From: Schmidtea polychroa
Taxonomy: Eukaryota
DNA: 64,000 bases
Assembly: GCA_044892525.1 (NCBI GenBank)
Contig: CM097887.1
Location: 87,894,397 to 87,958,396 of the forward strand
Reading direction: 5' to 3'
Part shown: one piece after another, positions 15,805 through 51,185 of the stretch
Layout: each line of letters opens with the position of its first letter
How positions within the stretch are numbered: position 1 is the stretch's first letter
Made by a program: the position numbers and the translations under genes
The notes under the pieces: model-generated
Seen by the model: only the letters and a program-made list of their open reading frames with translations
Told to the model about the DNA's origin: nothing
Databases searched by the model: none

Positions 15805-16170
15805 ATGTCTCAATCCGATGATTTTAGCGAAGGGGAAGCCGATCGGCAAATGGTTACCCGGCTCCGTACCCGGTATATTTGGTACCGCATCCACGATTGG
15901 AATCGTGGATTGGACCTCGATAACTTCGGCCCAGTTATCCGAAGTGGCCCGGAACCTGATGCCCCGGCGTGGGTAAAAACGGAGCCAGCCAACAACTTAT
16001 TACAGGAGGCCCGCGATCTAGCGGCCAGTGACGTAGAGGCCGCTCAAGTTCGGCTCAAGAAACTTGAAATACAGATCAGGGCCAAAAGAGAGGGAGTGTC
16101 CCTGGAGGAGCTGGAGGAGGCCGAGGCACCCCCACGAAAGAGAGGGAGGCCCCGCAAGTGCCAAATGTGA
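15805..16170 (+). CDS. Repeat-family ORF-a (copy A): 121-aa protein with coiled coil and C-terminal AT-hook
   Basis: ATG 2 nt after the acceptor ttttacattgcAG (15801-15802). Motif RLRTRYIWYRIHDW is shared with 48541-48600. C-terminal RKRGRPRK. Confidence 0.6.
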   Translation: MSQSDDFSEGEADRQMVTRLRTRYIWYRIHDWNRGLDLDNFGPVIRSGPEPDAPAWVKTEPANNLLQEARDLAASDVEAAQVRLKKLEIQIRAKREGVSLEELEEAEAPPRKRGRPRKCQM

Positions 16171-16427
16171 TCTCTCGCCGACCCACGCACTCATATGACA
16201 ATCGACTTAATTTAATTAACTTTTGTTTATTGTTTATGTATTAATTTAAATAATTGAAATTGCCTAGTGTTCGTTATTAAATAAAGTATTTTTTTTATCA
16301 AGTTGTAGGTTTAGCGGTTATAATAAGGCTTAGTGATAAAGTACTACCGTTAATTAATAATTTGATTACTTGTTTGTTTCAACTCTTTTTGGTATGAATG
16401 CAATTAATAAACTCCTTTATGTTTTAG

Positions 16428-16885
16428 TGTACAAACTATTGGAAAACCTGCGTAGAGACCGAGAACAGGCGCAAAAACAAGCCGACGAACTCCGAGTCTG
16501 GGTTGATAAACTCAAAGGGAAGTGCCGGGAGTTCGAGGGCACCTGGTTTAGTCCCGCGGATCAGATCCTCCAGCTGCAGACCCAAGCCGCACAAGATCAG
16601 ATGGAGATTCGCGCACTAAAATTACAGGTGCGCGCGCTCGAAACCGAGGGCAATGAGCAATTCGTTCACGAAGCCGTGGCAAGACAAATCCGGCCGCTGA
16701 CTGTAGAACTGGCCGCGATATACCCTCCAGCCGCTGAAAATAGACCCAAGCGAAAGCGGCTAGGACGGAACATTAGGGAAAAGTTAAAGAAGGCCAGGTT
16801 GGCCGAATATGAACGTCAGGCGAATTCTTCAACATCGCATGCGTCTGCGACGGGACTAACCAGCTCTGCCAACGAGCCAATTTGA
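16428..16885 (+). CDS. Repeat-family ORF-b exon (copy A): coiled coil, EGTWFSP motif, basic tail
   Basis: Open frame after the acceptor gttttAG (16426-16427). Homologous by eye to 24614-25372 and 49214-49652. Confidence 0.6.
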
Positions 16886-17004
16886 ATTGTTTTTTTTTGT
16901 TGATGTATATTTTTGTAGTGTATTAAAATAGTATACGAGATATTTTGTTATATGATTGCCTGAGGAATGAAAATTTGCGCGTAAGGTTTTGGGAAAACAA
17001 TTTC

Positions 17005-17230
17005 GGTAAGGGACCTGAGGAAATCGGACACAAACCTTCTAACGGTAGTCCGTGGACCCATAGAGTACTCGACAATTATAGTGCCTTAGTGCGCTCAACT
17101 TTTGCGAGTACTCAACCCCTTGGTACAGTACCAACGTTGATTACTCAACGGGTATCAAGCGGAAAACAATATTGTATTTTGGGTTACGCTGGTAACAGCA
17201 CTTAAACACTCGACCACCAGTAACCCACCA
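17005..17230 (+). repeat. Conserved structured terminal motif, copy A
   Basis: About 70% similar by eye to 49765-49998. TGGGTTAC (17180-17187) pairs with GTAACCCA (17220-17227), enclosing a GCTG-GTAA-CAGC hairpin. Upstream GTTGA-TTAC-TCAAC hairpin. Confidence 0.8.
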
Positions 17231-20200
17231 GAATTTACAACTATATTCTTTATCAAATAATCAGTATTATCAAATTAGTGATATAAAATAACGGCGGTCT
17301 ATGGAGGTTTGGCTTGGCCCTGGTCATGTTCCTTCTTGCCCTAAAATATGCACATGATCCTGCCCTCCGGTTCATTACCTAATCGCATTTTTCCTACCCC
17401 TCTTATTTGTTGACAGTCATTGTTCGTTTGGAAAATGTTTAACTAATCAGTGATGGAGTTTCGTAGTGTTTAGCTTGGTGACTTGTCGATTTCAATTTTT
17501 AATAATCATGTCATGTCCTCATTAGAATAATTTTATATTTTTATTAATGGCCGAAAATGAAGAGAAACGTGTCACCTGCAATTCGCCATAATCAAGGATT
17601 CTCCAATTACTCGAACTCAAACTTTAATCTTGATCAGACTAGATTCTTAAAATGTGACCCAATAAACGGTCGCTACAGTGTATGTTTAGTTACAAATTAA
17701 ATCTGTATATTTGTATACGCATTATTTATTTGGACATTAATGGTTCCCGATTACAATCATTTGAAGACCTTGAAGAAGCTCTGCAAAAAGGGGTCTCCCT
17801 CAGTGTATTGTTGATCCTCCCATTTTCCGCATAGTCAATGATTAGATCATTACCTTTTCTGCTTGTCATATTTTACTCTCACCGCCTACTCTGATAGGCA
17901 CATTTCTCGGTTTAAGTGACTTGTACCGAGTCACCACTTTGCATCCTTCTCCTTGCTCCCCTGTTTACGCCCATGGTTGTGGATTGATGTGGTATGCAAA
18001 TTCTTTATCCTTACATTACTTGACTTTAAATAAAATTTCTTGTGGATATTTTGAAAAATGCAAACAAATTAAATTGTTTTTAATATTTGTATTCAATTAT
18101 AGACGCTATAAATACTAAAAGTATAACAACAAAGACCAACCATGAAATCTCCAATGAATGACAAATTCAAGTAATATACCGTATCAAATGTACTTTATAA
18201 TATAAATTTAGTGATAAACAATCCTTGATAATATTATTTGAGAGCAATGAAGAGAAATATTTAACTTTATTCCACTATTTAAATATATTACATTTATGTA
18301 TAAAGATTAGGAAAACAAATTGTAGGTATTTTTCTTCAGTAAAACACTTTCAAATTGATACATTTTCAAAGAGTATTTATTTCCCATGTCAATTTAACAA
18401 TGATATAAAAAATCCAAATCCTTTATAAGCTATTTCTTGAGAATCTCGTATTCATCCATGAAATTGATTAAGTATTTTTTATCTTCGTTTTCAGGAACAA
18501 AACTTGTGTTAATTATTGTTATATCGTCTACACTGTATTTTCTGTCCCATTACCAAATCCATAAAGTTAATTCCTGCAATTTCCTGCATTTCCTGTTTCT
18601 AAGGGATGTTGTTCAGCATTTTCATTCATTCTTTCAATCTATAACTGTTGGGCAAGAACCCATTAATTCCGAAATTATTTGAAAGAACCGATAACATAAC
18701 GTGTATCTCAATAAGTTTTTCAAAATCTAATCAAAAAATTTCAAGTAATATGGCACTTAGTTAATTAATAATATATAAAACACAAGTAAATAAAATCATA
18801 AACGCGACAAAAGCAACATTTTCTAAAAACATTAGAAAATTGAATAAAATTAAATAAAACTATCAAAAAAAAACAAGTTTGCTGAAATAGTTTGAAAAAG
18901 AATTATTAAAGAAATTATTTAGTAAAATGGAAAAGATCAAAAGAAAATGATAAACAACCGATCGAAAATTAAAATTTAAAAGAATGAAATTAGTAATTAG
19001 AAATCAGGACACGCGTAAGTGAATTCAACTTGATTGGCTAATGAGACACTGACACTGTATTACTGTATACCGAGTTGTAGCATACCAAATAAAAATGTGC
19101 TGGGTCAGAAAGCCGATAGTTAATAAATTAATTAAGTAAGTAATAGAAATTAAGAAAAAACTGTTAGAGCAATCCACATAGCAGGAAAATCGCAAGAAGT
19201 CGATAAAAAATCATATTAAAAATACCAAATAAAAACAAAATAAATGTTGAGAAAAATCTGAATTTAAGCAGACGTAATAGTAACGTAAAGGGAATGTGTT
19301 GGATAATAGCATACAGACTCAGCATTAAGTAGAGTTAAAACATCAAGTAAACAAAATTAAAAAGAACTCACGTCACATCAAAAAGATAAACACAAAAGTA
19401 AAGAAAAATTAAAACAAAAGCAAGAAGTATTACACGAAACAAACTGAAACATAGCATAGACACAACAGAAGTAAACAAATTTGAAAAAATGGCGATAAAG
19501 GAAAATCGGAATGGAAATGGAAAAGATTTCCACAAAATATCATCAGAAAATAAATTAAGAGTCAAAATTATAACAGAAATGTTAAGAAATATGAAAATGG
19601 CGAAATCCATAATGACGGCCAAATAACTTGTTGAAGTTAAGTAAAATATAAAAGCTAGGAATTAATTACCAAAAACCAAAAAAAGAATAAAATAAGAATT
19701 AAAAGAAATAGGAATTAGTTAATAAAACTATTAAATTAGCACAGGATATTCTAAAAAGGGTCATATCATAATGGCGGCAAAATTATTTATAAATAAAATA
19801 TAGAAACTAGAAAAAAAATTAATCGTAAATTAAATTTTTAAGAGTAAAAATAATAATTTTTGTTTGTATTATGTTATAAGTTAATTAAACGATAGTGTCA
19901 GAGATTTTAATTTTTCTGTGTGTTTTTAAAACGAAACCATTTTTGATGACTAAAATCGTTAATCCTTTTTCGATCCTTAGCCACCACACCAAGCTGCAAC
20001 TCAGCAAAATCAAGACACATTCTAACTTACGAGGAGAGAAGCAGTTCTACTGCACCCCTTATCAGACAATTTCTTGTGCCTAATGTGGATATTTACATTC
20101 TTTCCGAGAAAGCAGTACCTTTTTTTTGTTGGGTTAGCGGAATACTCCTTCCAGGACAGCCAATTCATCACCAGCTCAATTTCTCTTCGGAACATCTACT

Positions 20201-22149
20201 TCTTCACCGAATTAACTAATTGACTTTGATAACTGTCCAACTTTTGAAGATATCTCAATCGCAAAAGATCATTTTTGTCGCTGGACAGTGATCCCCGTTT
20301 CTCTTCGGCATCCACATACAAAACGTACATCCCAAGAACATTTGAGAATGCATCAAACCTTTACGTCCGGAACATTTCAAATTCAAGCCTGCCTAGATAT
20401 TCATGAAGCTATATATAAGCTAATCGAAATCAAAGATAACAATGCTAAAGTTATCATTAATGACTCAATGCCTCTTTAACCTATGCCATTTGGAACCAGA
20501 CTTTTTGCTTGACGACACATCCTTCTTTGATGATTGTCGTACTCCGGAAAACAAATTTCCTGAAACCGAGAACTCATACATTGAAGAACCATTACTTCCC
20601 ATCGAAGATAACTGTATAGCTTATTCCTCTTTTGATACAACTACTGAGACCCCAAATACAACTGCTGAGAATGCGGAACCACCCACAGTAAAGATCATCC
20701 AAAAGGACGGCATTTAATACTCGGCAAATTATAAAAAGGAAAATGATTATTAATTTCATGATCATGAGTCAATCATCATGGAGACGGTTGCCAATGTAGA
20801 CTTGGCTTAACTCGAAGTATAATTGATTTGCACACCACAGGAGTGTAGTAAATTTAAGTTCAATCTGTGTACATCGGTAGAAAATGATTGATAAGCACAC
20901 CAGTACACAAGGTGCTAAGAAACAAGACTAACGTATGGGGGAGTTCGGTACAAAGTAACAAACACAAACATCTGGCTTAGCTAAGTTATAAGTCCACGCG
21001 TGCTTCAGAGATATTAAAAAAAGTGTGACTAATAATATGTATACGTATGAGTGTAATGGACATGAAAAGAATGATGGACAGCCCTTACAACAGACATGTA
21101 TGGTATTTGGACTAAAAGTATATACTTTATGAATTTAATAAATTATTGAAATATTTATACTTATATTTTCGTTTACCGCTGAGGAACAATAAGTGAATGG
21201 AAATATTGATGGGCTTGACACAGAGTAGATAGATGATGATACGTAACATGGGAATGAATGGGTTATGAGATAGGCAGTAAGCTAGTGCATCAATTTTATC
21301 GGCGTACAAAAGCTGGCTCAAAATTTCCTTTCTAACCGGTATACTTCATCTGATTTTGTGTTTTCCGTAACATGCTTCATTCACTAACCTAGTCTATGTA
21401 AGGGCTTATGGATATTGTTCTACTTATGTTTTGGATAAAATATAAATCAGGATCAATAGGTGACGAGGGAATGTCAGTCCTGAGCGCATGTAGGCCTATG
21501 AAGGGTTGTTAAAAACGTCTTAAGAGAGTGGGAGTGGTGATGAATGTGTCTTATGAAGATATGATTATAACATGGGTATCTGAAATTCACACAGTAAAGG
21601 AAATCAAAAAACCGAGGGGAGCAAAATCTGGATCGACCACCACAATTGGAAAACAACCAGGATTAGAAGCTGAAATCAAAGCTACAGTATGAAGTTGTAA
21701 AACAGACCAATGGATCAGTGGCAGTCAATCAGACAAACGGAGGATCGGACCTGCATCATGGTGGTGTTAAAACGATAACACATCTTAAATAAAGCGTTTA
21801 TGGTTTGCAGTCAAGCCCTCCAGGAGATTCGCATTACCATTGACAAATTATAGCGAAATGACGAAGATATCCGACAAGGCGTCATCCCCAGTACCGATGG
21901 GTAGTGCTAACAGTTTGATGATGATGAATTAATGGAGGACATGATCCACTATTGACACCAGGAGCTTAAATTTCCCGAATTGGTGTCGAGGAAACGCACT
22001 GAGTCCAGCGAAGACGTAACAGACTGTGACAGCAGATCGGGCCGCTTGCCCCAGGGTGTTTGGGCAGTGAATGTGGAACATCTGATATTAATAAATTACT
22101 TATTCAATACTTCTATTGCGAAATAGTAGAAGTGTTGGGCTGAGTCGAA

Positions 22150-22750
22150 AGCATAATCGTCAAATTTAGGACAGATAAGACGCGAACAAATAAAATAAGA
22201 CCACAAATTGCTAAAATAAATAAATCAAGAGACAAAAGAAACAATAACGTAAAATATTAAGATTAAAACAAAAAATAAAAAATAGAAAAATTAAAATAAG
22301 GTAATAAGATAAGGAATAAAATGACGAAAAATGCAACAAATAATGAGGAATTTAAGAAACAAATAAAAAATATATTAAAATAAAGAAAAATAAGGAAAAA
22401 CAACCAAAGAAATAAGAAAAACAAATTAATTTAAAAGTTAAAGCGGTACTCAATTTTGATTGGTCCGCATAAACAAAAAATTCCTATATAAGCAAACAGC
22501 AAATTCAATATAGTTACTGTTTAACAACCACCATTACAGGTAAGCTCATAATTTAAAAACTACTGTTTAACAACCACCATTACAGATCAACACTCAACCA
22601 TTACAGACGATCACCGACGTACAACCTAAACGACTATCAGGGACAATTAGATTTTCAACTCAGTACAATAACCGAATTCAGCTTTTCGACTCAGCTTTTC
22701 GAGATCACAGATCGATAAAGAATAAAGTAAGGATGTATTCTTATTATGAA
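22150..22750 (+). mobile_element. LTR-like promoter segment
   Basis: A-rich run, TATATAAG near 22486, duplicated 25-mer tactgtttaacaaccaccattacag (22515 and 22561), donor CAG|GTAAGC at 22540, AATAAA near 22722. Confidence 0.45.
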
Positions 22751-24613
22751 TTCGAGTAAATGTTTCTCATGGAAGTTAATAGTAATAATGTTTATTATCA
22801 CAATTTTAATAAAATTTTAATGTTCTCTCCATTTGGTCTCATATTTTAATAATCAAGTATTTTCAATAATGAAATTTAAAACCTTTTATGATAGATAACT
22901 ATGCATGATGATTTCGATTTTTATGGAATTTATATGAAAATTATGGTTGAGTAACGTGGAGTTGAGGAGACCTGTACCATGGTGTGAGGAGCCTTCGGGA
23001 GCTCAGCCGGTGGGTACAGACTTCTTCAATCACGCAGCTGACGTGGGCCGGAAAGTGGGGGCTTCCTCACGGGTCCATCGCTGAGGGAATTAAAATGTTG
23101 CAAGAATTAGCTGACAATAACATAGAATACCATTCGGATTGGAAGATGAGGACGATCTTAAAAACCATGACTGAGGTGGCTACAAACGTTTATTTTTCAA
23201 AACCCATCATTCTTAGCTGTTACATCTTGAATTCTTTACCTAATACCCGTAATCAGTCTGAATCGCCTAAGTGTGCCAATCGACATTCCATCTTCTGAGT
23301 ACCAAACCCATTTCTGTTGAAATGCACGTCAATTTCCGTCTGACCTGTAGAAACTGAGTACCAACCCATTCGTCGACGCTATACAATCACATGAGAAGTA
23401 TAGATGAAATTTATGGAGCACAATAAGAAAATGTATTACGAAACTGTTTTATTTTTAATCAAATTATTTCGAAGTGTTCTGAAAATTACACTCACAGTAG
23501 GATAAACTCCCTTCAGTAAAGGACACCTCCGATTGACCTTGTCAAATTGCAGATTTTTCGAATAAGTCGAAGGAAATGTCCACGAAATAAAGTTATCCAA
23601 GTAGAAAACACAATTAACTGCACATCGCGGGGAACAAATCCAACATTAGCGTTTGATGAGAGAGCAACCTAGATGACATATTGATTCCACGAATTGATTC
23701 GACCCAGTGGTGTATTGCGATCATCTGCGAACGATAATTCCGATAATGACCAAACATACGAGATAAATCACACGCACTAACACACTAGTACTTACTCACA
23801 TATGCGACCTGCAGTATTTTCCCAGTCAGCTACAAGTATTGAGAACCGAAATTAAAACACGCACAGACAACAGGGCTGGCTCGGATAGATAGCAGGCCGC
23901 CTGTCTCATGCTTCCATTATCTGGCATGACGAACTATTTTTCATGAGATTAATCTTATTACAGGCGTTTCCCGACATATAGCTAATTTCATCGTAGATTA
24001 AAATTTTGACTTGCAGAATGGTAATTCCGAACATTAATAATAGATAACGGCCAGGTGATTGGTGCATATTCCAAACAATTTGGTATTAAACGGGGACCCA
24101 GCAGCTATTGAGTGGAGATTAATTTTACCTGCGCATCCGCTTGCCGAGGTGGGAATTCTGAGTTATGTCCTGGGGGAATAATGCGTTGGTTAAGGGGGAA
24201 ATCGGAAGGCGTTAACAGTAAAATTTTGTTTTCTGCGTTTGGTCTATTTCCAAAGATATTATTAGAAGGAATTATTAGTTATCGGCTCAATTTCGTTGTC
24301 CATTTTGTGTACAAGGAGGTTGGGCATCCCCGCATCTAATTAATTACGAATTTGTTTTTGTTGTTTTTCCATTACACCAAGGGAAAGGGGGTCACGGCTT
24401 ACAACTCGACCGGTAGATGACATTCGAATTTAATAATAATAACTCAGAGATTTTCTTCACCCGTTAGCATAAATCCCTTCCTCTTAATATATTAGGACCA
24501 CATCAAAATTAATGTATAGCTTGTAGGAAAATTCATAGATGATTAGGCCACCAGGCTGGTTTAATAGACATAGCGAATCTTGTATTTTACCCTTATTGTT
24601 TCTTTCATTATAG

Positions 24614-25372
24614 CCATTGAGAATGTTACCAAGCTCGAAGTCGTCTCTCAAACCCTGCTTCTCATGCTCAGATAAGAATTCTATAATCAGAGATTTGCAA
24701 GCCCAGATCGGTCGATACAAGAAAGCGATCGACCATCTGGAAGGTACATGGTTCAGCCCAGTACAAATGAAGGAGGTACAAAAGAAATTGTACCGAAGCG
24801 AGCACTGTCGCGACGCCTTAATAAGCGAGAGTAGGGCCCAACGCAGTCTTATCAAAGAGCAGTCCGAGGCTCTACACGAGGTCTACGTACAAGCGGCAGC
24901 AACTAGAAAGATAGTGAGTATACCTATCAATGGAGCGGACGACCTTTTCCCCGTCCATCATGAACTTCCTTCCAATTCGTCATCTTCGGCTAAGAAGCCC
25001 TGCCGGGAATGCGTGGAAGCCGATCTCTCTCCCCGGTCAACCATAGTGTCTCCCATTGGAGCCCAGAAAGGGATATCATCGACCGCGTCTTCCTCTGTCG
25101 TACTATCAAACACCCTGATTGTTCCAAAACCCAAGCGTCGACAGTTGTCCAGAGCTGAGCGTAAAAAGCGTCAGCGCGAACGAGCAATCGCCAAACAAAG
25201 TGGACTATCTGCCGAGCTCTCCAGTACTTCGAACGATCCCCCTGTAACGATCGATTTAACCGTAGGGATCCCAGGGCGAATCATCTCCGCCGCTGGTGTA
25301 ACTTGGGAGGAGAATGCCTCCGAATTCTTCGAGCTGGAGGAGCTGTTAGCCGACGCAGAATGGGAAAAGTAA
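24614..25372 (+). CDS. Repeat-family ORF-b (copy B), about 250 aa, intact
   Basis: Acceptor ttcattatAG at 24612-24613. LEGTWFSP motif, coiled coil and Arg-rich KRRQLSRAERKKRQRER. AATAAA near 25510. Confidence 0.6.
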   Translation, partial: PLRMLPSSKSSLKPCFSCSDKNSIIRDLQAQIGRYKKAIDHLEGTWFSPVQMKEVQKKLYRSEHCRDALISESRAQRSLIKEQSEALHEVYVQAAATRKIVSIPINGADDLFPVHHELPSNSSSSAKKPCRECVEADLSPRSTIVSPIGAQKGISSTASSSVVLSNTLIVPKPKRRQLSRAERKKRQRERAIAKQSGLSAELSSTSNDPPVTIDLTVGIPGRIISAAGVTWEENASEFFELEELLADAEWEK

Positions 25373-26269
25373 AGATCTCAATCCAATGCAACTACATCGA
25401 TCATGTTTAGTAAATTGAACGATTCTGACTTATATGTTCTCGTAAACCGTCTTCCCTTGATTTATATTAGTCCTGTAGTTTTAACTGTATAGCGTACTAT
25501 GATAGTAGAATAAAGAAATTTTCGTCATTTCTTATTGTTAGTTTTTGTTTGATTAGCCATTATAAAGGTTCAGAGTAGTTTTTACAACCCAAGCGCAAAC
25601 TTTAGTTCGAAAAGCATTAGACAATCTGTATATAACTCGGTGTCAGGTAGGGAAGGAAATGGTGGAGTGATCAGACGTAAGCCCTTCCATCGGCAGTCAG
25701 AAAAAGGAAGTCGATGCCTCAGTAAGGAGTAGTCCTAAGGTAGGGGCTCACCTGCTTACTGGTGTCTCGCCGGCATAGCACATTTCCAACGTGGAGCAAT
25801 TCACGGGTGCTATGTTGGAGTACAAGTTGTGCGGGGTCTTGCTCCGGATTGACGTAAGCACACTTAGCGTAAATGAATGGACACTCATCTCCTAGACAGG
25901 TGCGTAAATGAGTTAAGGTCAATCAAGCACTACCCCAGCAGAAGAAACAACTGATTTAGATTTCCATTAATAACTGAGGTTTGATGACAAACAGGTATAG
26001 TGTAAAACTGAGCTTAGGTATGATGACACTTATGATAGACTTACGTATAATTTTAGAAGAACAGCATTTGCACGCACTACGCCTGGAGCTACAACAATTA
26101 CGAACGGTAAGGCTGCTTCAATGTGGATGCGGGGAAAGAAACGCCCAGGATACGGCATGTCAATAGAACTTTTTGCAGAATGTTGTGATTTAAAATTAAA
26201 TCTTAGTACAATTGTTTTTATGATTTCCTAATCATTATAAAGAAAACAATTAATAAACATGGGGCCTAA

Positions 26270-34463: not shown

Positions 34464-37400
34464 TATTTTTGTGACTGGACCTGTTTACTCTATCAACTGC
34501 TATATCCGTACAGTATTACGCAGTTATACACCCGTTTGCACTGAATAAACGCATCTATAATATGGGTTGGTATGAACAACCAATTATAGAAATTTAATTA
34601 TGTTAATTTATTGATTTATTTATTAGCTACAAAAACTCAAAGCTATTTTAACTATTTGTATTTAGCCATTTTAGAAATTGCTTTCAAGTAATTTTTTTTT
34701 ATTAAAAGTAAACTTTTAAGGCTTGAATATTGATCCATATAGATATGAAATCATTATTCAAGCTCTTAAATAATACTTTTTATCAACATTTTTTATTATA
34801 AATTATTTTTAATTAATTTTTCACGAGTTTTCGATGTTATTGTTATTATTTGGAATTATTTCAATGTTTTATTATTTCATTAAATACAATTTATTAATCG
34901 CCAAAAATATCAATTTTTTACAACATTTAGGGGAAACGGTAGATGTGTTGAAAATAGTATTTTAAATTTTTATATTCGTCTTTTTTTCAGTTTGTCAAGT
35001 TCTGAAATTCTATAGAAATATTAATTTTTAAATTTAAGTTAATAAAATTTGAGATGACCTGCAAATCAATCAATTCAATCAAAAAGTTTAAATAATTATT
35101 TTGATTATATTATTCAAAATTTATTATTATAAAATGGTCATTATTATAAAACCGGCTTGGTATGCAACGTTCTAAAATGGCTTGGTAAATGGCGGGTTAA
35201 ATGCTTTTATTCATTGCAACGATAAAAATCAACACATAGGTAAGTTTGTATGTTTATAAACACATACACATTTTTTGTTTTATATTATAGGTGCGTTTAT
35301 TGAGTGCAAACGGGAGTATGTAAGAACATCTCGACGCTAATAAAGCCAGTGTGTCTGACATGACCAATCTAGGTAACTAACGAACGGCTTCTAAAACTCA
35401 AGGAAAAACTTGCTCCGTATCTTGTGTATATGCATAAATTACGAGCACAAAGCTATGTAAATTAACAGGCCTCAATCTCTACAAGCTTAAATTGATAAAG
35501 TCGCAGTCTAAATCTAATGTACAAAATATTATTAAATATCTAAATAGATATATTATATAATGCCATATTTTAACCATTGGCAATTTATAGTTCACATATG
35601 CTTGGTCCATAATATAATTATTTAGAATCAATAAAACAAAAAAAATGATAGAAATAACAATATAAAATTTAAATTAAATGTTTTCATTAAAATTAATATA
35701 AGTTACAGAATTGAATATGATTCACTCATCTGAATCATGTGATCTCTAAAAATTAATTTATAAGATATCTTAAACAAGAGCAAGACAACAAAAACTTATT
35801 TAATTGTTATATTTTTGTTATATACCAACAAAACAAGAAGGTTGAAAGGGAAAATAAGAAAGGATATATTGACATATTTTTTAAAAATACTTTTCGGTCT
35901 CCTAACATGAAATTAGAATCTACTATTTCTATATCTATTGATAACAAAGAATATACTGGGAATCTTATGTATTAAATAATTTTGAAAAATGTTTATTTGA
36001 CGCTTTTAATGAATTTGATAAATTATAGGAGACATCGGAGCAACGTTAAGAACTTAATAAAACAAAATAACTTTTTAAAGTATATTATATATAAAATATA
36101 TTTTATATTTTACCAAAACGAATAAATTAATTATGCAGCTAATATACAATTTTCCAATCCATCAGGTGATTTTCGATTATATACATATTGCCATTGTAAT
36201 TCAATAAAAACAAACTCAATAAATTTATTGTTTCAGTGTGGATTATGGATAAGAAAAATTTTAATAATGCTAAAATTATTGATATGCATCAATGACATCG
36301 AACAAAATTTTCAAAATATTAAACTTAGAACAATCCAATATTTATAACAAAAATTTATTATTTTAGAAACCTTCATCAATCAAAATTTAATAAATATCAA
36401 ACTTATTTTATTTAAAATTCCTTTTTTTAATAAAATATTTTAATTTAATTATTATGACTGCATTTAATTAAATTTCATGACAAATTATTTTAATTTATAA
36501 TTTATAAATTTATATTTGCTTTATCAATTCAATGTTATATGATTTGTTAAGCCATATAAATTTGAATAAATGCATTGATTTTAAAAATTAAATATATTAC
36601 AATAATTTTCAATAACATTTTTTCAATATTTATTATTTCATTTATTAAATTCGCTTAATAAATTGAAAAGTAAAATTCGCCATTTTACTTTTTTCAGAAA
36701 ACATTTATTTTGAAAAGTTAGACACTTATAATTAATTAAGAATAACAAAATTAATCAAACTTTAATAATCATAATATACTAACATTCTTTCCAGTTATAA
36801 GAAACATATATTCATGCAATAACAAAATAAACTCACATGGACAATAATATTTCTTAAAAAATGAAATATAAATTATTATGTAATAACAATAAAAAATTAC
36901 TATACTTCAAAGATCTTGCTTCGCGTTTATTAAGAATACAAATTTATAGTTCAAATATTAAACAATAACTTATAAATTGCTATTTAATAGGATAAATTAA
37001 ATAAGTTTTCCATTTTAAAATTTAAAAATATATATAATAATTTTCTATGTTTATTTAACATTTTTTAACTTCATCAAAATGCACAATTCAGTCCATCCGT
37101 CAACTTAGTTATGCGACATTAATTAAAACTTCATTAAAGTTTTTTGCAAATTTAATAAGTAACACATTCAAATAAAAAAAACAATTTAATAAAATTTATC
37201 GAAATTGGAAAATGTAACTAAATTATGTAAATTTTGCCATATATTTTTTAGCAAATAATTATTTCGCAGAAAAATTAAAAAAAATTATATTAATCCATAA
37301 AAGAGTAAATAATAAAAATATTAATACATTTATTATTTCGATAATATAAAACTAATAACGAAATTCGTTATCTAACAGTGATTTAAATAAGTACAAAATA

Positions 37401-37631
37401 ACAGAAACAAATATGCACACCATTAATTATCTTCAAACACCGACATAAATAAGTTCAATGGGAGATGCGTTAAAATTTTCAACATTTATTTACATTTACT
37501 AATAAGAAGTATATATATATATCCTAGGACCTAAAAACCATCCAACAAAACGAGAAAATCAAATGTTACAATAAATAGGCAACGTAAACCACACATGTTT
37601 AGGATAGAAAAACATTAAAAGATAATAATAA

Positions 37632-40600
37632 TTATTCCAGCTTTTTTCTACAATTTTGACAAAAAGGATTTGTCGGGTTATGATTTTGAAATTTGCAACT
37701 CCTATTACAATCATATCAGTTTCAATTAAAATATATATTTACTTGCAAATTATCTTCATGTTATTCATAAAAGGGACTCGGGGAATCGGTCCGCCGAATC
37801 GCATAGCATTAGGATTCATGAATGGCGCCTTGTTAAATTTAATAATAAATTATAGTGAATATCCCCTTACATTATTTGATTGACTATTTTGTAGTGACAA
37901 AACTATATTTGCTGCCATAGTTCTAATAAAATTTGCCTGATTATCCACATTTGCACGATTACTGTTTTGTGGTTTAGCTTCATATCTTACCGGTTGACCC
38001 GGCATTCTTACCGAACCCATAGTTTGTAAATTATACACTGTCTGGCCCATTTTACCATTTGGATTCATTTTTCTTTGTTTATTTGCAGGAGTATCATATT
38101 TATTTGATGCCTTATTATTCGGAGTAGTTTTAACTGCTGGTTTATTAGTACTGAAAGATGTAATTTTAATAATTATCAAATAAGTTTTGAATGGAAAATT
38201 CCCTAAGAAAAATTAGAAACAATAAAAAATAGATTTTTAATTTTTAGGTTAGAAAAATCAATATTTTTATTTATGAAAATTTGAAGCACTATTTTCTGTT
38301 TGCCAAAGACTATTTTGTATATTTGATTGAGTATAAAAACAAATGAATAAAGGAAATTGGAAATAAAGACAGGTGAAAAAAATTTAAAAAAATTATGGTT
38401 AATAATTTTATTTAAAAAGGAACTTAAAGCGCTAATTTATTTAGCATGAATTTGATAGGAAAACATGAAAAAATTTTATAAAGTTAATAATTAATTAAAT
38501 GTGAAATTTATTTAGTTCAATTCAGAATTTGTATGGTATGAAAAATACAAAAATTCGCAATAAGAAATAATTTAGCGATTAAATTAGAAATTTATTTTTT
38601 TAAATATAAATCTAATAACAGGATCGAAAATAATGGTGAACATTTTTCTTTTGAATTATAATAAATCAAGTTACAAGAAATAAATTTAAATAATTATCAA
38701 AGATGTGTAAAATTTTCTTTCAACTTAGCTGAAAATAATTACACTCTAATTGAAATTTGATGAAAGGAAAACATGGAAATCTATGTAATTTCACTCAAAA
38801 TCTAATATATTTTAATATTACTGTGGCGTCTCTAGCAAATATTTTTGCATCCATTGAAATAAATTTTAATATCAATATTCTATTTAAGTTTCATTAATTT
38901 TCAAGCAATAATTAACCAAAGACTATTTTTGTCTTTTTGAATTAAATTTTTGAAATTAAAAACTATGAAATGACAATAAAGAAGATCAACTAATAAAATT
39001 GTGTTTTAAAATTCTAAATTATTTTTAAATAATAAAATTGTATTTCGTAAAAAAATTTCTTTTAATTAAAAAATGTGTAGTTCTTTTCAAGTTTCAATAA
39101 TTAAGTCGGAATAATATTATGAATTTTGCAAATAATTGATAATTATAACAGATCTATTCTTAATAAATTAAATATCACCAAACTTTATCAATAAATTTAA
39201 GGATAAATCAAAAATCAATTGTTAAATTTACCTATTTACTTTATCAACAATGGGTTCTGGTGCTTTGACAATATTTGTACTAGGCTTATCAACAATTATA
39301 TCTGAAGATTCTAAAATTTATAAAATAATAAAGTAAAAATTCAGTTAAGTTTAAATATCAGTTTACTGATCTCCTCATTTAATAAAAATTGTACATTATA
39401 TTCATTCGAAATTTAAACACATTCAGTATTGAACTCTTCGTGCTTTAATTATTTTTAAAGTCTTATTTGAAACTTGGAAAATATACCAAAATAAATCTAA
39501 TTAGATTAAACATGAAAAAGGGAAATACCAAAAAGAATATTTTAAAATGTTTTAAATAATAATTCGTCTTTAAAAGATACTTTAGTAAAAAAATTGTTAA
39601 TAAAGAATAATAATTCTTTTTAACATTTTAGATAACATGAAAATGTAAAAAATATAAAGTAATGCAAATGTGCCATTATAAAACTATAACATATTTAAGT
39701 ATATGTTTAAAAAAAAATAACACAGTAAATTTTAAATATAATTAGCAGCAATGAAAAATTTCCTTATATAAGAAATTGTGGAAAATTTAGAATTGATTAC
39801 TTCATTTTCAATACTTAATAAACCAATCTTTCTTTATTTAGTTTTAATTAGATATTAATTCCGCTGTGTCAGTATTTTGTTGTAATTAGTGGAAATTTAT
39901 TAAATTTATTTGTTTTTGCTTATTAAAGTTTTTTAGGAGAAAATTGGAACCTAGTGAGTTAAAAAAACGCTTTAATTTGAATTTCAAATTCGATTTTCTA
40001 CATTAATTGTACTAAATAAAATCAACAATAAATGAATTTTACGAATCATTTCTATAAGTACGAGAAAAGCTCCTATTTATAAGGAATACCTGAAAATAAA
40101 GTTAATTGCATTTATAATTAAATTAGTTATATAGTATACCAAATATTTCAAAAATGTCCGTGCTTAAAATGCTTTCACAAATATTTTATAAAAAATTAAC
40201 TTCAAATTGTGAGGACAAATTGAAACAGATGGAAATTTACTATAAAATATCAGGACATTTAAGAAATATCCATTTAGAATAATAATTTGAAGTGAAAATA
40301 AAATATTAAATTAAATATTCATTTTTAAGATATAAATGAAAGGAGAATCAAAATTCTTAAAAACTTTGCTTCATTCTCCACGAGTATTACCTTCCAATTT
40401 TCTTTTAACGCCAACTTTTTCTTTATCAATCGAGTCATTGTTTGACACGACAGGGGGAGCAATCTCGATCTTATCTGAACCTATATTTGCAATTTTTGGT
40501 TCACTATCAGTGAACCTAGGAGATTCAGAAATATCAGGGACAGGTAAAGGATCGCTCATAACTGTGTTTATGCTGATATCGATGCATTTGTATCCTTGAC

Positions 40601-42756
40601 TAAAGAGACTAGAAGATATAATGTCTACACTATCAATGGCATAGTCCATTATATTGTTTTCATTTATTCCGCCACTAGCTTCGATTAAGACTGAGGGGTT
40701 GATGTTTTTTACCTGTTTCGATACAGACCTGACATCCTAAATACAATGGATAATTGCGCTTTAAAAATTGAGGATTATCCAATAATAATTAACAAAATTT
40801 AAAATACCCTGATATAACAGCATAATTTTATTCAAAACAATGAAACTGATACTTGTAAAAAAGATGTGAAGAAATTTTGTGTTAACTATAAAAAATATAT
40901 ATTGATCTAAAGCTGGAAATGAAGTCAAAAGAAATTGTAAAAAACAGAAGTTTGTAAAAAATACGAAATCACTCAACAATTTTTGACATTTCAATTAAAA
41001 AACCATGGAAGCAAACTGTAATAAATAGAAAATAAAGTATAAAAATTATTTAGAAATATTAAAAATAAATTATGATATTAAATAATTTTAGTAATATTGG
41101 TTCTATAACTTAGCTTTAGTAAAATATAATTTTTATTAGGCATAATAATCAATCAACTTTCAAACAAGCTGCAATAACAAAGTATTTTAATTGATAAATA
41201 AAACAGATATTGCTGTAATATTTTAATAGATTTTTTTCTCATTTTTATTTTAGTGAACTCAATCAGCGTGATAAAACTTAGATTTAGAAAATTAACTTAA
41301 ATATTTTTAATTCCGAGGCGTGGAAACAATTATTTTGTAAAAAATCTTGAAAAAACATTTTTCAAAAAATAAACTTGATAAATGTGATATGAAACAATAA
41401 TTAATCAAAATTTAATAAAATACAGTAAGAAATGGAAGATATAAGATTCACATATTTAGATTTATAGAATTTTGCAGAGACGCCACTAAGGCAAAAAAAA
41501 TCATGAAACATTTTATTAGTATTTAAAATTAATATATTCCCGAATTATTATTTGAATAAGACAATTAAATTAAAAGATTTGGCATCAAATATATTGTCAG
41601 TTTCATTATAGTTATTGATTAATTGAAATAAGTCTTTAACCCTTTGAAGATCTTCATTAATTATTATTTGAATTGTTGAAATTTCCGAAACTTGAAAAGA
41701 AATTGATTTATAGCGTATAAAATTAATCAGATTTTTAATAAATTTGTATATTATCCAAATAATTCAAAACAAATGACAATGTTATTTAATACCGATGAAT
41801 ATAAAATTTATCCTGAACAATATTAATTAGCGTAAGAATTCCATGCGTTTTGAGATTTTAATTTTTGTAACAATTGTTTAATAATATGATATACTGTTTT
41901 AAGAACAATTATTTCTTATTATTCCACCCAACTTGTATTCCTGTGTTCTTAACTAGGTTTTCATCTAGGTTCGATTAAAAAAAATTGTTAAATTAATAAC
42001 ATTTGTAATTTAATTTACAACAATAATACTTACGTTAGTATTAAAATTATCCAGCATAACAACATCAGCACCGGATTTAACTGCTTCTAAAGCTTCATTT
42101 AAATTACCACATTCAACTTCGATTTTAATCAATTTTCCAATTTTCGATCTTAATAAATGTACTGATTTTTCTATACTTCCATTAGCTTTCACGTGATTAT
42201 CTTTAACCATCACCATAGAAGACAGGTCGTAGCGATGTGTTGAAATACCGCCTATATACATAGCGTATTTTTCCACTATTCTGAATCCTGGAGTGGTTTT
42301 ACGACTACCAGTAAGTTCACCATTCCAAACCTTTTTTATTTTAATAGATAATCTATTAGCTACTGTAGCAACTCCACACGCCCGAGTCAATATATTGAGG
42401 GCAGTTCTCTCTGCCATTAAAATTTTGTTGGCGGGACCTTTGACTATACCAATAACCGAAGGCTTATCTATATAACTTCCTTCTAACTCATTCCATTTTA
42501 CTTCACAATCAAAAAACTTGAATACAGCTTCTGCAAATGGCAAACCAGCCAACATTCCTATTAAATAATTAATTATATTCAATAAGATTCACAAAATACC
42601 TTTCTCTTTCATTTCGATTTTACCATTAATAGATTCATGGTTAACAACAAGAGTGGATAAATCAAAATTTGGAATATCTTCATTAATCCAAAATTCCACA
42701 TACTTTTTCAGTACGACGGGACTAATGATTAAAGAAAAATCAGACAAAGATTCCAT
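37632..42756 (-). CDS. QPRT: Quinolinate phosphoribosyltransferase with about 227-aa C-terminal extension ending in a C4 zinc finger (7 exons, 513 aa predicted)
   Basis: Exons 42756-42600, 42557-42034, 40736-40391, 39310-39232, 38150-37871, 37828-37743 and 37701-37632; all GT-AG and phase-consistent. Catalytic motifs GSRKTTPG, HRYDLS, KDNH, IEVE, MLDN and EASGGI are intact. Exons 1-3 are high confidence; exons 4-7 are inferred from splice sites and phase. Confidence 0.85.
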
Positions 42757-43829
42757 AGACTGTTTATTTCGAAAAGTAAATACACGTGAACGATTCAAAC
42801 AACCATATAAATTTTATTTAATTATTTTTTTAAATTTTGGAATTAATTAATTTTCAATTATAATTTTTTATGAAATATTTGTTATATAGTTTTCCTTAAT
42901 TTTTCTAAACCTAAATTAAGATAATTTTGTTATGGAATCATCAAGCTACTGAAAAATAAATTTCCATTGTATTTTAATTTCTTTTAATTCATAAGTCATT
43001 GATTAATAAAAAGATTAATAAGCCTAATTAGAAAAGACATGCAATTAAGAAGAAAACAAAGGTACTGAACAAAATAGGGTACTGTATTTGTTCTAGGGTC
43101 TTATTGATCTCTTGAGGATCTTATCAATCGAATGCCTATGGTGAGATGAAAAGAAAAGATATCAGTTACTCAAGGCACCAATATGACTATTGAATCTAAC
43201 ACCTGTGTATCCATGGTGACAGCCCATGTTGGTGCTGTACACAGTGGCTGGATGTGAGAGGGAAGCCGAGCTCCACTGCAGAAATTACTACTCACTTGCT
43301 GCTTTCGATTATTAAATTGTTCCGCCTTCTGACCAATCTTATAATTTTCTTTTCTACCTCTTTGACTCCAGAACGAACCACATCGCCTCCAGCCTATTGA
43401 TCTGGGTATTAAACTTGCCCTTTTGGGCCTTCAATTGAGACCATTTTTATATTGGCGATACATGATTATTATCTAAATAATGACCATATGCAACACTCTC
43501 ATTGAGGCCTATCCAAGTTTTTTTGTGGTCATTTTTACTCAACCCTTGTCAGGCCAATTGTTTACAATTTGTAGTAAAAATATTTTAAAATTCAATTGCT
43601 CTACTGAACTTTGATAAAAATCAATTTCCTTCTACCTACATTTTCGTATTGGATTGACTAATGAGAAAATGTGTTTGTCGTTTGACTATTATATTCACAT
43701 AGGAAAGTTGAATGTTTACATACTCAACTGCTCAAGTGACTACAATTCGTAGTTTATATACCTATGTGCTATTATTAATTTTTTTAAATTTATTATGAAG
43801 ACATATGACAAGGTAAATACATAAAACTA

Positions 43830-45495: not shown

Positions 45496-45960
45496 TTAAC
45501 AATTATACAAATTTCCGTGATTACTCAGAACTTTACACAGTCGCAATCTTATTGATGCATAGAAATCCAAAATTTTATGTCGCCTGGTACAGTTGATAAG
45601 AGATATTACATCCGTAATTTCTTTTTCTAAAACAGCTATGTTTAAGAACTGCGGTCCGTCATAAACCATATCTGAAATCATCTTCCAGACATCCTCAACT
45701 ATATTCAAGTCTGGACTTCGTGACGGCCATGTAATCGTTGATATATTACTTGATTTCAGATAATCTTGGACAATCCGTGCTTTGTGTACTGTGCAATTGT
45801 CTTGCTGGAAGTAAAAATTCCTCTTTAGGTTAACTTTCATTATTGGCACAGCAAAGGTCTTCAACAGGGTAATGTAATCGGTCGACTTAAATTTGCCAGT
45901 TATCATGTGGAAAGATAGAAGTCCGTTAGGAAGGATCATCAGCCAGACCATAATTCCATA
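45496..45960 (-). mobile_element. Tc1 (DD34E) transposase, 5'-truncated
   Basis: FQQDNCTVH ... WPSRSPDLNIVEDVW with 34 residues between D and E. Confidence 0.9.
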
Positions 45961-46019
45961 TAAGAAGATCGAAAATTGAGCCAAGATTTTTGGTTTGCTC
46001 GGGTTGGGCAAAAACTGAC

Positions 46020-46560: not shown

Positions 46561-48420
46561 AAATTCGATAATACATGCTCTCTCGCAAATGAGCCAATCA
46601 CTATCGACCACAACCAACGAAACGATGATTTTCATACAGAACCCTACAGCACCCGTATGAATCTAACCTACTCGTAGACCAAAATTTCCCCTCAGACCTA
46701 CCTGATCAACCCAACAATGGTCCTAGGGTAACATCACTATCATTGTTCAGGTAGTTACATTCCCCATTCAACATATACGCTGTTAAAAGCAGTTATCATA
46801 CTTATAACTTCCAATAATTCTTTATGAATCTATTTTACATGCAAGTAGAAAATAAAAATATTTAATTCGCATTTTAAAAAAAGGGAAAAATGATACCTGA
46901 AAATCATGTTTAAATACTCTTTGTAGTGTAAGCGTTAATAATAAGAATCAACATTTTTTTGGATGTTTGTCGTTATTATTTATATTATTATTTTTTATGT
47001 GATTGTTGTTATTTTATTTGTTATTATTTTATTGTTGTTATTTTATTATTTTTACAAGGTAACAAATATTATAATAACCAAAAAATTATTATAAATTACA
47101 ATTTAAAAAAAAGATCGATAAAAATTCAAAAATCAAATTCAGAAAAAAAACTAAGCAACTTAAAAAATCCAAAGAGAAGAAATTGTAATAACCAAAGAAG
47201 AAATAAATAGAAACTCGAAAATATAAGGAATATATATGTCCTCTAACAATCCGGGGCAATTAAAGGAAAACATTTGGCTATTCTTTACCTGGAGTAAAAC
47301 TGAATTGACCGAAATTATAATATTTTGTGTATATGCCAATAGCGCTTTTGATCATTCATTATATTATTCATTACATCTAACAATTCGTCATTCAACTAAG
47401 ATTCCAGAAATTAGATTGAGAATTACCAAATTCGGGAACATATCTGGTCCTGCATTATATCTAACAATTCGGTGTGACCAAAGGGTTTTTTTTCGTTTAT
47501 ATTAACTGAATAAAGTTGTTAATAATTTAATTCTATCGTTATTAATTTATTCAAGTGCAAATATTTATTTTTATTGTACCAAATTCATTTTTCGCATTCT
47601 ACACACAGGTACCCCAGCAGTCCCAAAACAGATTCTAAAGGAGACTCTGGTGGGCTCTCACAATCTCTTAATATACATCTTAATATGCATCGTACTGCGT
47701 CGACTAGTTACCAGCATCATTAAACTTGATTAGTTAGCCCGAAACAAAACGTTAATAACCTCCGTTGACCCAAAATGAATACCTACGGAATTTTTGTATA
47801 CATGAGATTTATTTCTACTACAATTGCAGGTAGAAGAAAGGAAAGAGGCTCGAACAAAGCTCCGAGCATTACGATTCAGCAACATACAATTGGTTTCGGT
47901 GGAAAACCACTTAGCATAGTCGGGGGATTTTAACCTAAAGTTGAAATGAAAATCATTAAATTAACACCATTTAATTACATAACATGATTTAAAATTTTAA
48001 TAAATAATAACTTAACCCAGTAACTTAGGGAATTTAATTTTTATTTATTTTGTAAGAAGAACAACAGGATGGTTTAGCCGGTTTAAATTTTATATATATA
48101 TATATATTTTCTTTCTTAAATTTTGTGGTTGAAAAGGGAATTCAAATCGTGTTCATGATATGTTTTTAAAGAAATATATGTTTAAATTTGAATTTGTGTT
48201 TCAGTGTGATTAAAGTCGAATAATATTTCAGTTCACAATCCTTAATTGCGGGTCAACCTAAACGTTGATGTTGTTACTATTACACGATCAGTAGAAGGGG
48301 AAATAGGGCACACAACGGGTATAAAATAGGGAATCCCAGGGGTTTCAGGTGAGAAATGAGTCTGGGAGAGTTAAGTCAATTCTCTAGGATTTAATTAACT
48401 AAATTTTGTTATTTGAATAG

Positions 48421-48900
48421 AAATGTACTCGACAAACTACTTCTCGGGCTAACGCGTCGACAGCCGAGTCCAATCTAGAAGTGTCCCCAGTGAGGCACGA
48501 GGGACAAACTACTTCTGAAGACGACTAATCTCACAATCAAGCTCTTATCAGACTTCGAACGAGATGGAAATGGTACTGTATCCATGACTGGAGACACCAG
48601 AACGTCGTCCCGGCAGAGCCGAAGGTAGAGCTCTTCATCAACTATACAAAGCAAGCGTTGATGGGGGCCGTCGACGACGTCAAAGCGGCCCTGAATCGGC
48701 TACAAAAACTGGAAACCGAAACCATCGCCGGTGAATTGGAAGATCCCGATGGATACGCTAAGTCTCAATGTTATTCCGAAAGGACTGCCGCCATATGGTG
48801 TAGCGTGGAAAACCCAGACGTTTGCAACGTGAGAGCAGGGAGCCGCGACGAATACTCCCCTCAACCAATCAGCCGCATTGTGATCAGCTGTACATTTTAG
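48421..48900 (+). pseudogene. Repeat-family ORF-a (copy C), disabled
   Basis: Acceptor ends at 48420. ALIRLRTRWKWYCIHDW..ALMGAVDDVKAALNRLQKLE is homologous to copy A. One in-frame TAA near 48526; the first ATG is out of frame. Confidence 0.65.
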
Positions 48901-49213
48901 ACGGTTCTGATGCCGTTGCCATCTCAGTTGACTGATCTGTTTTGACAATTTACTTTATTCCATTTGTCTACAATTTACTTTGTTTAATTTGTTAATAATT
49001 TATTTTGTTTAATTTATTTATAATTTATTTTGTTCAATCTGTTTATGTTTCTAAATTTTGATATGCCTGCATTTGACTTAATTTGGGGATTAACGGCGCT
49101 CTGATACAAGGCCGGAGGGTGGAATCTACGTACAATACAACCTAAATTATATGGGTGCGATTAATTGACTAAATTAACAAGAGAGTGTAACATTAAATAA
49201 TTCATCTTTTCAG

Positions 49214-49652
49214 TGCTGAAATTCTTGGAAAATATGCGCCAAGATTGCGAACGGGCGCAGCAGCAAGTAGAGGAGTATCAAGCCAAATTATCAAAATTCA
49301 AAGGGCGCTGCCGCGAGTTGGAGAGTATGTGGTTTCCGCCTATCGAAATGCAAAAGCGCCTAAAGCTGATCCAACAATTACAGCTTCAGAGCACTCAGGA
49401 CCAAATAGAGTTGCGACTCTCCGCCTGAGAATCAGGGAGTTGGAGGCACAGGTGAATCAACAGGAGATCCACAAAGATGCGATAGCCCCAATCCGGCCTC
49501 TGTCAGAGCTTATTGACAGGACCAGCACTTCTGCGCCTCCCCAGAAAAAGATTCGTCTCGGTAAGGCAGAACGGGCCAGGCAACGACAGGCTAAATTAAC
49601 CCACCTGCCAATTACTCCAACTGCCCCAATGGAGTCGAATAATGTACACTAA
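49214..49652 (+). pseudogene. Repeat-family ORF-b (copy C), single frameshift
   Basis: Acceptor ttttcAG at 49212-49213. KFKGRCRELESMWFPP matches KLKGKCREFEGTWFSP of copy A. Frameshift near 49420. Basic tail KKIRLGKAERARQRQAK. Confidence 0.7.
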
Positions 49653-49764
49653 ACATATACTGTCTTATGTATGATTAAAATTAAATTTGTGTTTATGGTT
49701 ATGTTAAATCGTTTATTTGCATGAACTCTGATAAAGATTGATCATTCGGCAACACAATCTGGAA

Positions 49765-49998
49765 GTAAAGGGACCGGAAAAAATCGGACATAGGTCTTCT
49801 ACCGGCAGTCCGTGGACCCAAGTTGAATACTGGAAAATTATAGTATGCCAAGCATACTCACTTTTTGCTGATACTCAAACCCTTGGTAAAGTACCAACGT
49901 TGATTACTCAACAAGTACCAAGCGGTCGAATTGTATTTGTATTCTGGGTTACGCTGGAAACAGCACCACGAGATAAGATGTTGATTACCTGTAACCCA
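49765..49998 (+). repeat. Conserved structured terminal motif, copy C
   Basis: TGGGTTAC (49945-49952) pairs with GTAACCCA (49991-49998), enclosing GCTG-GAAA-CAGC. Shares cagtccgtggaccca and gtaccaacgttgattactcaac with copy A. Confidence 0.8.
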
Positions 49999-51185
49999 AT
50001 AATAATAATAAAATGATAAAAAACAAATAATAAACAAATATATTAGTACATAATAAAATTGGCCTTACTTTCGAATAAATTCAATAAAATAGTTATTATT
50101 CTTTTTAAAAGTATAATTAGATAAATTCTTAGAATAACAAGAATAAGTTACTAAGAATTTTTTGTGACCGAAATGCATTGGTATATATATCCTAATTATG
50201 GTGTGTGAGTATATATGCGTGCGTTGATTCAGTAAAACAAATTTGAATTATTTTAATTCTAGCTAATTTTGAATCCTAATTTTTTATCGATTTAATTATC
50301 GATTTTTTATAAATTATTATTAATTTCATTTTCTAAATGTTATATTTGATTTATTTTTAATTAGATTTGCCGCCATGATGGATATGGGTTTTTTCAGAAC
50401 ATTCCACGATGTTTTTTTGGTATTTTTAATAAATCTTTTTTGATTTTAGTTCCTATTTCTTTTTACCGCAGTTAATTCAATTTTTTACTATTGTTATGTA
50501 TTCATGTTGTGTTTGAGTAGGTTTCATGCAATACATCTTGATTTTGTTTGATTTTTCTTTTAATTTGGGTTTATTACTTTTGTGTGATGTAAATTCTGTT
50601 AATTACATAAAACTTTGACAATTTATGTGAAAACATATTGAAAATGATGAAACATCAAGGACTTTGATTAAACCTGCATAAAAAACTCTGTGAAAATACC
50701 TTGAAAATCGTGAAAAATCATAAAATTTCAGTTGACCTACATAAAATTTTTATTGACCTAAATAAAAATACTAGGAATTTTACGAAATAAAATCCTCTTG
50801 GAGGTTGATCAAACGATGGACAAACTATCAACTCCCCAAATAAGTATTAATTTTTATTTAATTTAATAAATTTTTGTACTTTTATTATTTTGGTGTTTTT
50901 ATTGATTTTTTTACCTGTGCTTCTATTTTATTTTTGTGCCTTTATATAGTCCCCTATCATATGCTCCCTTTTAATTAAAATTCATCTTCGAATTTATTTA
51001 TTTGATTACAAAAATATGTTTAAGATAAGCATTGGAAGCTTTGTGATACCCAGTGCAAATCCAATAGTAGTCTAGTTTCGAGTCTCCTGCATAGTACTGA
51101 TAAAAGCCAAAATTTGTTCTTTGGATATTGGTTTTCATTTTATTGAGGATACCATCTTCTTACCATTACCTCTAAACCAATCTAG

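Follow-up and report, generated by a model that had tools for sequence, protein, structure and literature searches.

The window, i.e., the complete 64,000-nucleotide stretch of Schmidtea polychroa DNA analysed here, carries a QPRT gene whose seven minus-strand exons (42756..37632) splice in frame to a 1542-nt open reading frame for a protein of 513 aa (Table 1). All exon borders in the gene are of the GT..AG type. The product comprises a complete QPRT (aa 1-286) and a 227-aa tail that terminates in a CxxC-x11-CxxC motif. The start codon is found at 42756-42754, and RNA contigs have their 5' ends at 42769 and 42765. In the 3' UTR, AATAAA occurs at 37490 and again at 37334, and an (AT)n run is located near 37510-37525; the contigs here have loose ends, 165-171 nt in length, before 37512, and these match the genome further on.

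Table 1 Features of the seven-exon QPRT gene, numbered from the first letter of the window; joints are given in the direction of transcription
Feature	Position	Strand	Content
Exon 1	42600..42769	-	Short 5' UTR and coding sequence 42756-42600, aa 1-52
Exon 2	42034..42557	-	QPRT core: end of QRPTase_N and first two thirds of QRPTase_C
Exon 3, first part	40560..40736	-	Final third of QRPTase_C (EASGG ... DISINTV), ending at aa 286
Exon 3, second part	40391..40559	-	Pro/Ser/Asp-rich, fast-evolving linker, aa 287-342, from Met287, with KRKLE
Exon 4	39232..39310	-	Linker exon of variable sequence, with phase-1 entry; joints 40391→39310 and 39232→38150
Exon 5	37871..38150	-	Conserved C-terminal module (aa 385-513) begins at 38104
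Exon 6	37743..37828	-	Conserved Pro/Met-rich stretch and first Cys; joints 37870→37827 and 37742→37700
Exon 7, coding part	37632..37701	-	C493, C505 and C508 of CxxC-x11-CxxC and conserved RKKLE before the stop
3' UTR	37341..37631	-	RNA contigs extend to about 37341-37347

The enzyme part has the N-terminal domain followed by the complete C-terminal barrel domain of the family (PF02749 and PF01729). In Pfam searches, exon 2 matches QRPTase_N with 49.5 bits (cut-off 27, E 5e-13) and positions 1-111 of the QRPTase_C profile with 126.7 bits (E 1e-36), and exon 3 continues with positions 114-168 of 169 at 40.3 bits. This match stops at aa 284, two residues short of the end of DISINTV at aa 286, and DISINTV aligns with the DFSLKI(Q/L/S) segment of mollusc and reptile QPRTs, the stops of which follow 13-18 residues further on; the domain boundary is thereby located where the original prediction had placed it. 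The motifs RKTTPGFR, THRYD, KDNH, IEVEC and MLDN, all encoded by exon 2, and EASGG occur at aa 138, 159, 171, 198, 220 and 246, respectively, and align with those of the mollusc and reptile enzymes. In QPRT structures, substrate-binding or catalytic roles belong to the Arg-Lys of RKTTPG, the His-Arg pair, the Lys of KDNH and the acidic residues of EVE and LDN. Judged by its sequence, the QPRT part is intact and probably active.

Beyond the enzyme the frame runs on directly into the tail, from the codon of Met287 (40559-40557) past the KRKLE patch (aa 338-342) without a stop ahead of the donor at 40390, and reading through this donor would give a product of 348 aa. The exon 5 part of the C-terminal module includes a predicted helix, NQANFIRTMAANIVLSLQ, and the conserved stretch in exon 6 reads APFMNP..MRFGGP.PRVPFMNNMK, with the codon of C490 at 37747-37745. 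The protein ends in ...ICKSCKFQNHNPTNPFCQNCRKKLE before the stop, with the motif C-x2-C-x3-N-x7-C-x2-C, which holds all four cysteines of the tail. These details (the DISINTV end, Met287, KRKLE, the exon phases, the C-terminal motif and the 348-aa read-through) reproduce those noted originally. The open tail frame is far beyond chance: its 227 codons contain no stop, the two alternative frames contain 12 and 38, and the frame stayed open in 0 of 20000 shuffles. The GC content of the tail exons is 35%, compared with 19% in introns 3 and 4, the two long ones. A classic nuclear localisation signal was considered for the tail and rejected, KRKLE and KQRK being patches of no more than three basic residues and KRKLE lying within the fast-evolving linker.

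Expression was assessed by comparing four sequencing runs with positions 37500-42900, in the form of assembled contigs, which alone cannot prove one molecule spanning exons 1-7. The runs from the organism of the window (organism A) share about 0.28 of sampled words with the stretch, which equals its exon share. Two of these, X2 and X3 (from the same sample), yield one contig each, of 1846 and 1836 nt, which contain all seven exons joined at exactly the six predicted sites (CT..AC on the plus strand), have 13 or 9 nt of sequence ahead of the ATG and include about 290 nt of 3' UTR. The label of the runs as RNA is a guess; since the contigs lack every intron at GT..AG sites, however, their source must be spliced RNA. 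An independent study of organism A, X1, gives shorter contigs with the same joints, including 42599→42556 and 42033→40735 on the two sides of exon 2. Its depth is even over enzyme and tail exons (900-1366), with values of 1083 for exon 2, 1137 for exon 3, 987 for the joint between exons 3 and 4, 1366 for that between exons 4 and 5, and 900 for exons 5-7. The joining of the QPRT exons to exons 4-7, as originally proposed, is thus borne out by mature-RNA contigs from two species, in which the decisive joint between exons 3 and 4 is present.

Because the donor of this joint is located within the QPRT frame and no stop precedes it, a QPRT-only mRNA would need intron retention. The 348-aa isoform noted originally finds no support as a meaningful product: its only counterpart, an X1 contig (39859-40420) unspliced at the 40390 donor, has a depth of 13, i.e., about 1%, and extends more than 500 nt into the intron in the manner of pre-mRNA.

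Conservation of the tail can be followed in two relatives. The first, a sister species represented in many studies (organism B), has about 93% identity in the enzyme, and its joints are found at depths of 457 (40391→39310), 215 (42033→40735) and 671 (37870→37827). Its differences in the enzyme exons are nearly all synonymous, and the one listed difference in the last exon is synonymous as well; in the exon 3 linker, by comparison, four of the five listed differences are non-synonymous, and the contig over 40391-40513 contains no indel. The differences of organism B match protein P0001 (L36I, I198V), a record of 247 aa that is 93% identical in exon 2, is the closest match to this exon in the representative library and forms a 90% cluster with one member. 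P0001 is devoid of the tail and ends in translated intron 2, and is therefore a mis-call and not a real short protein.

The second relative was retrieved by a search with a piece of exon 5, which returned two proteins, P0268 (a genomic ORF) and P0269, the latter encoded on L003, a 1070-nt JGI contig from a third, more distant planarian-like species. L003 covers exons 4-7 only, without QPRT exons; it has these exons in spliced form with a 3' UTR, and the 175 nt ahead of exon 4 terminate in ...aaatttcag at a phase-1 acceptor, as in S. polychroa. An in-frame stop lies just upstream of this acceptor, and the 175 nt look like a retained intron 3. Over the last 128 codons, 101 residues (79%) are identical between S. 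polychroa and L003, with pN 0.11 and pS 0.80, i.e., with synonymous sites saturated, which indicates strong purifying selection on the tail. The four cysteines and their spacing are kept, together with F, QN, NPF and the RKKLE before the stop. Evolution is much faster in exon 4 and at the beginning of exon 5 (0.36 against 0.49). From these comparisons the tail is seen to consist of a linker that varies (about aa 287-384), followed by a module under constraint (aa 385-513). The tail is thus more than the low-complexity arm described originally, its last 128 residues forming a strongly conserved module.

The identity of this module was pursued at the level of profiles, structures and clusters, the protein searches being made with pieces of single exons and with two short peptides, of 51 and 30 aa. 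Neither the linker, nor exon 5, nor the whole orthologous module matches a Pfam family; the tail has no PDB sequence match and no Atlas cluster match, and the exon 3 piece has no match among proteins of 63-201 aa. Scans of a metagenome collection with an alignment of the tail and with a conserved DNA pattern were also negative, a result of no weight given that the collection does not include the sample from which L003 derives. For the terminal finger, the profiles matched in both species are CRIPT, BssB/TutG, DZR and DZR_2, all sub-threshold with E values of 0.004-0.08, and Atlas searches give low-score zinc-ribbon leads that point to double zinc ribbons. In an AlphaFold model of the orthologous module (three sequences) the pLDDT is poor at 53, with about 52-55 in the finger region, and only the helix over NQANFIRTMAAN... 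is moderately confident.

The original prediction described the finger as RanBP2-like, and a true, divergent RanBP2/NZF finger that binds ubiquitin chains or single-stranded RNA, and so couples NAD synthesis to those systems, is the alternative that survives best, albeit as an unlikely one. The arrangement C-x2-C-x-F-x-N...C-x2-C forms the very end of the protein and follows a disordered region, as in RanBP2/NZF (PF00641) proteins, with two CxxC pairs about ten residues apart and Phe and Asn after the second Cys; by these features it presumably resembles the C-terminal NZF of TAB2/3 and Npl4, a likeness that we treat as a lead only. PF00641 (cut-off 27 bits), however, gives no match at E<=10 with either of the two peptides (51 and 30 aa), with P0269 or with parts of P0269. 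In a genome scan that served as a positive control, this profile detects 22 sites elsewhere and none at the QPRT locus; a caveat for the scan is that the finger is interrupted by an intron behind its first Cys. Set against the RanBP2 consensus W-x-C-x2-C-x3-N-x6-C-x2-C, the finger reads I-I-C-x2-C-x3-N-x7-C-x2-C in S. polychroa and L-F-C-x2-C-x3-N-x7-C-x2-C in the L003 species: both sequences retain the Cys pairs and the Asn, but neither has a Trp two positions ahead of the first Cys, and the loop has 11 residues instead of 10. Ubiquitin binding by NZF motifs is defined by a Thr-Phe/hydrophobic patch, and the position of the Thr-Phe pair is occupied by Lys-Phe in S. polychroa and Asn-Phe in the L003 species. 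PDB sequence searches return weak CRIPT and BssB matches or none, and no RanBP2 or NZF chain. The generic zinc ribbons (DZR, PF12773; DZR_2, PF18912; the C-terminal CxxC pairs of CRIPT; BssB/TutG) are the sole profiles that touch the motif, with scores below the curated cut-offs; there is one CxxC...CxxC unit here, and the likeness lies essentially in the Cys spacing. The finger is therefore best called a putative C4 zinc knuckle or zinc ribbon of no assigned class, and not a member of RanBP2/NZF, and going by its four spaced cysteines, CxxC-x11-CxxC most likely binds one zinc ion.

A further alternative, which we consider distinctly improbable, is that the tail module is also, or mainly, a separate protein, made from an internal promoter or by trans-splicing, the fusion contig being a merger of overlapping transcripts. 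Flatworms use spliced-leader trans-splicing, and two starts offer themselves, i.e., Met287 in exon 3, positioned exactly at the border of enzyme and tail and preceded by ...acag, or a start in intron 3 with translation from the conserved Met of ...KMNPNGK. The latter would be in keeping with L003, which opens with 175 nt of intron-like sequence ahead of exon 4 and has its first in-frame Met in the conserved MNTNGK; the in-frame stop ahead of its acceptor, however, is what a retained intron would be expected to show. A nested start or trans-splice site at 40559 had also been raised with the original prediction, but exon 3 is represented in X1 by a single unbranched contig (40391-40735) at a depth equal to that of its neighbours, neither a break nor a listed loose end occurs near this position, and the tail exons are no deeper than the enzyme exons (900 vs 1083-1137). 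Moreover, exon 4 is entered in phase 1, contains no in-frame ATG and encodes a DIVDKP patch conserved in both species, so an upstream coding exon is needed.

It is very improbable that the chimeric transcript is an artefact of assembly or of read-through between two independent neighbouring genes, with no fusion protein formed: overlapping transcripts can merge in contigs, and P0001, the sole public protein entry found for organism B, breaks off in intron 2 and is tail-less, but the donor joined to exon 4 belongs to the QPRT frame, intron retention as the alternative amounts to about 1%, the same joints recur in three studies and two species, the frame is open across four joints, and the end of P0001 is translated intron sequence.

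We accordingly favor, with good confidence, a single constitutive gene instead of two, the main mRNA of which encodes the 513-aa protein in three parts, i.e., QPRT, linker and zinc-motif module.

To our knowledge, animal QPRT is a stand-alone enzyme of about 300 aa, and the present comparisons agree with the original remark that QPRTs end near 300 aa without such domains. A profile search with an alignment of QPRTs listed 120 close metazoan QPRTs, most of which have 296-335 aa and none of which is a planarian fusion, and the tail is absent from all 150 nearest cluster representatives. The canonical eukaryotic enzymes of Mytilus, a reptile and Lingula share with the S. polychroa protein both domains, the motifs and about 53-56% identity in the core, but are tail-less and stop 13-18 residues past DFSLKI at about 300-320 aa, whereas the S. 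polychroa protein has 227 additional residues and four extra exons. The closest architectural parallels are bacterial QPRT-biotin ligase proteins (P0070, P0109), in which a second module directly follows the last strand of an N-terminal QPRT, and P0009, a 527-aa eukaryotic QPRT with a module in the same place and a weak PBP2-like C-terminal match; the partner domains in these proteins are unrelated to the S. polychroa tail. Low-complexity ends occur in other QPRT forms. Our literature search found no paper on planarian QPRT or on a fusion of QPRT with such a tail. By sequence comparison, the predicted protein has an unusual conserved domain architecture with an unclassified module, unlike the QPRTs of other animals.

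In the 781-Mb assembly, the QPRT core and the tail are each single-copy and match this locus only, which makes the fused gene the sole QPRT gene and implies that this animal depends on the fused protein for de novo NAD synthesis. 3-HAO (3-hydroxyanthranilate dioxygenase), which produces quinolinate, is encoded elsewhere on the same contig; the pathway that feeds QPRT thus exists.

The following picture of the fused protein would account for these observations. The linker is probably disordered, and the C-terminal module (129 residues) would combine the predicted helix, the Pro/Met-rich stretch and the terminal CxxC-x11-CxxC. The tail presumably lies outside catalysis and may serve the active enzyme as a module for partner binding or localisation. 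QPRT is oligomeric, a hexamer in humans, so an oligomer would present several copies of the tail, and these could tether QPRT to a partner or compartment. That triclads recruited a lineage-specific, conserved zinc-binding module onto their sole QPRT, and thereby tether de novo NAD synthesis to a partner or compartment, e.g., a nuclear, RNP or ubiquitin-marked site, is a speculative extension of the single-gene reading that we put forward tentatively and regard as rather doubtful.

Two corrections to annotation follow. P0001 (247 aa), the only public protein record found for a close relative, is a mis-call by which the architecture is obscured, and the terminal finger should not be labelled RanBP2-type.

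QPRT catalyzes the committed step from the tryptophan/kynurenine pathway to NAD, and here a conserved extra module is attached to the sole QPRT of animals that are studied for their stem cells, regeneration and lack of ageing. The extra module suggests that NAD synthesis may be localised or regulated by protein contacts in a manner not known elsewhere. If the tethering proposal is true, both the architecture and this regulation of NAD supply would be undescribed for any QPRT, and the module would represent a new protein domain family.

The public protein record of the sister organism (P0001; UniParc UPI00060A7121, 247 aa) spans exons 1–2 of the QPRT gene and then runs into intron 2 (...DNFSSNVRIIVNMNNYTGNDFTTHRI), and it is a truncated mis-annotation that masks the real seven-exon gene. 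At the other end of the gene, the 3′ UTR contains an (AT)n run whose length in the assembly differs from that in RNA contigs assembled for this organism. Alignments of these contigs are interrupted at the run, and the remainder forms a loose end of 165–171 nt.

Sequence features in the window and on its contig
Feature	Position	Strand	Evidence
(AT)n run, QPRT gene 3′ UTR	window 37505-37530
171-aa ORF, DDE_3 transposase domain	window 45496-46011	(-)	domain match, E 4e-12
GC-rich islands, 35-44% GC	window 16001-18000, 20001-26000, 48001-50000
Three PF00641 (RanBP2-type) fingers, single 206-aa open frame	G000:C3:2627984-2628559	(+)	profile match

Outside the GC-rich islands, the window has a GC content of 20–30%. 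The DDE_3 ORF is Tc1/mariner-like and lies upstream of the QPRT gene, about 2.7 kb from its start. Away from the QPRT locus, the contig that carries the window also holds a genuine multi-finger RanBP2-type gene, since the three profile matches share one frame.

The transcript contig L003 from a third, more distant planarian-like species (JGI sample 3300031122, contig Ga0170822_14070187) retains the 3′ end of intron 3 in its first 175 nucleotides (L003:1-175), and introns 4–6 are absent from the same contig. The end of intron 3 in the window aligns only weakly with this segment. Its retention in L003 reflects either that the long intron 3 is the last to be spliced, or that the transcript has an internal start.
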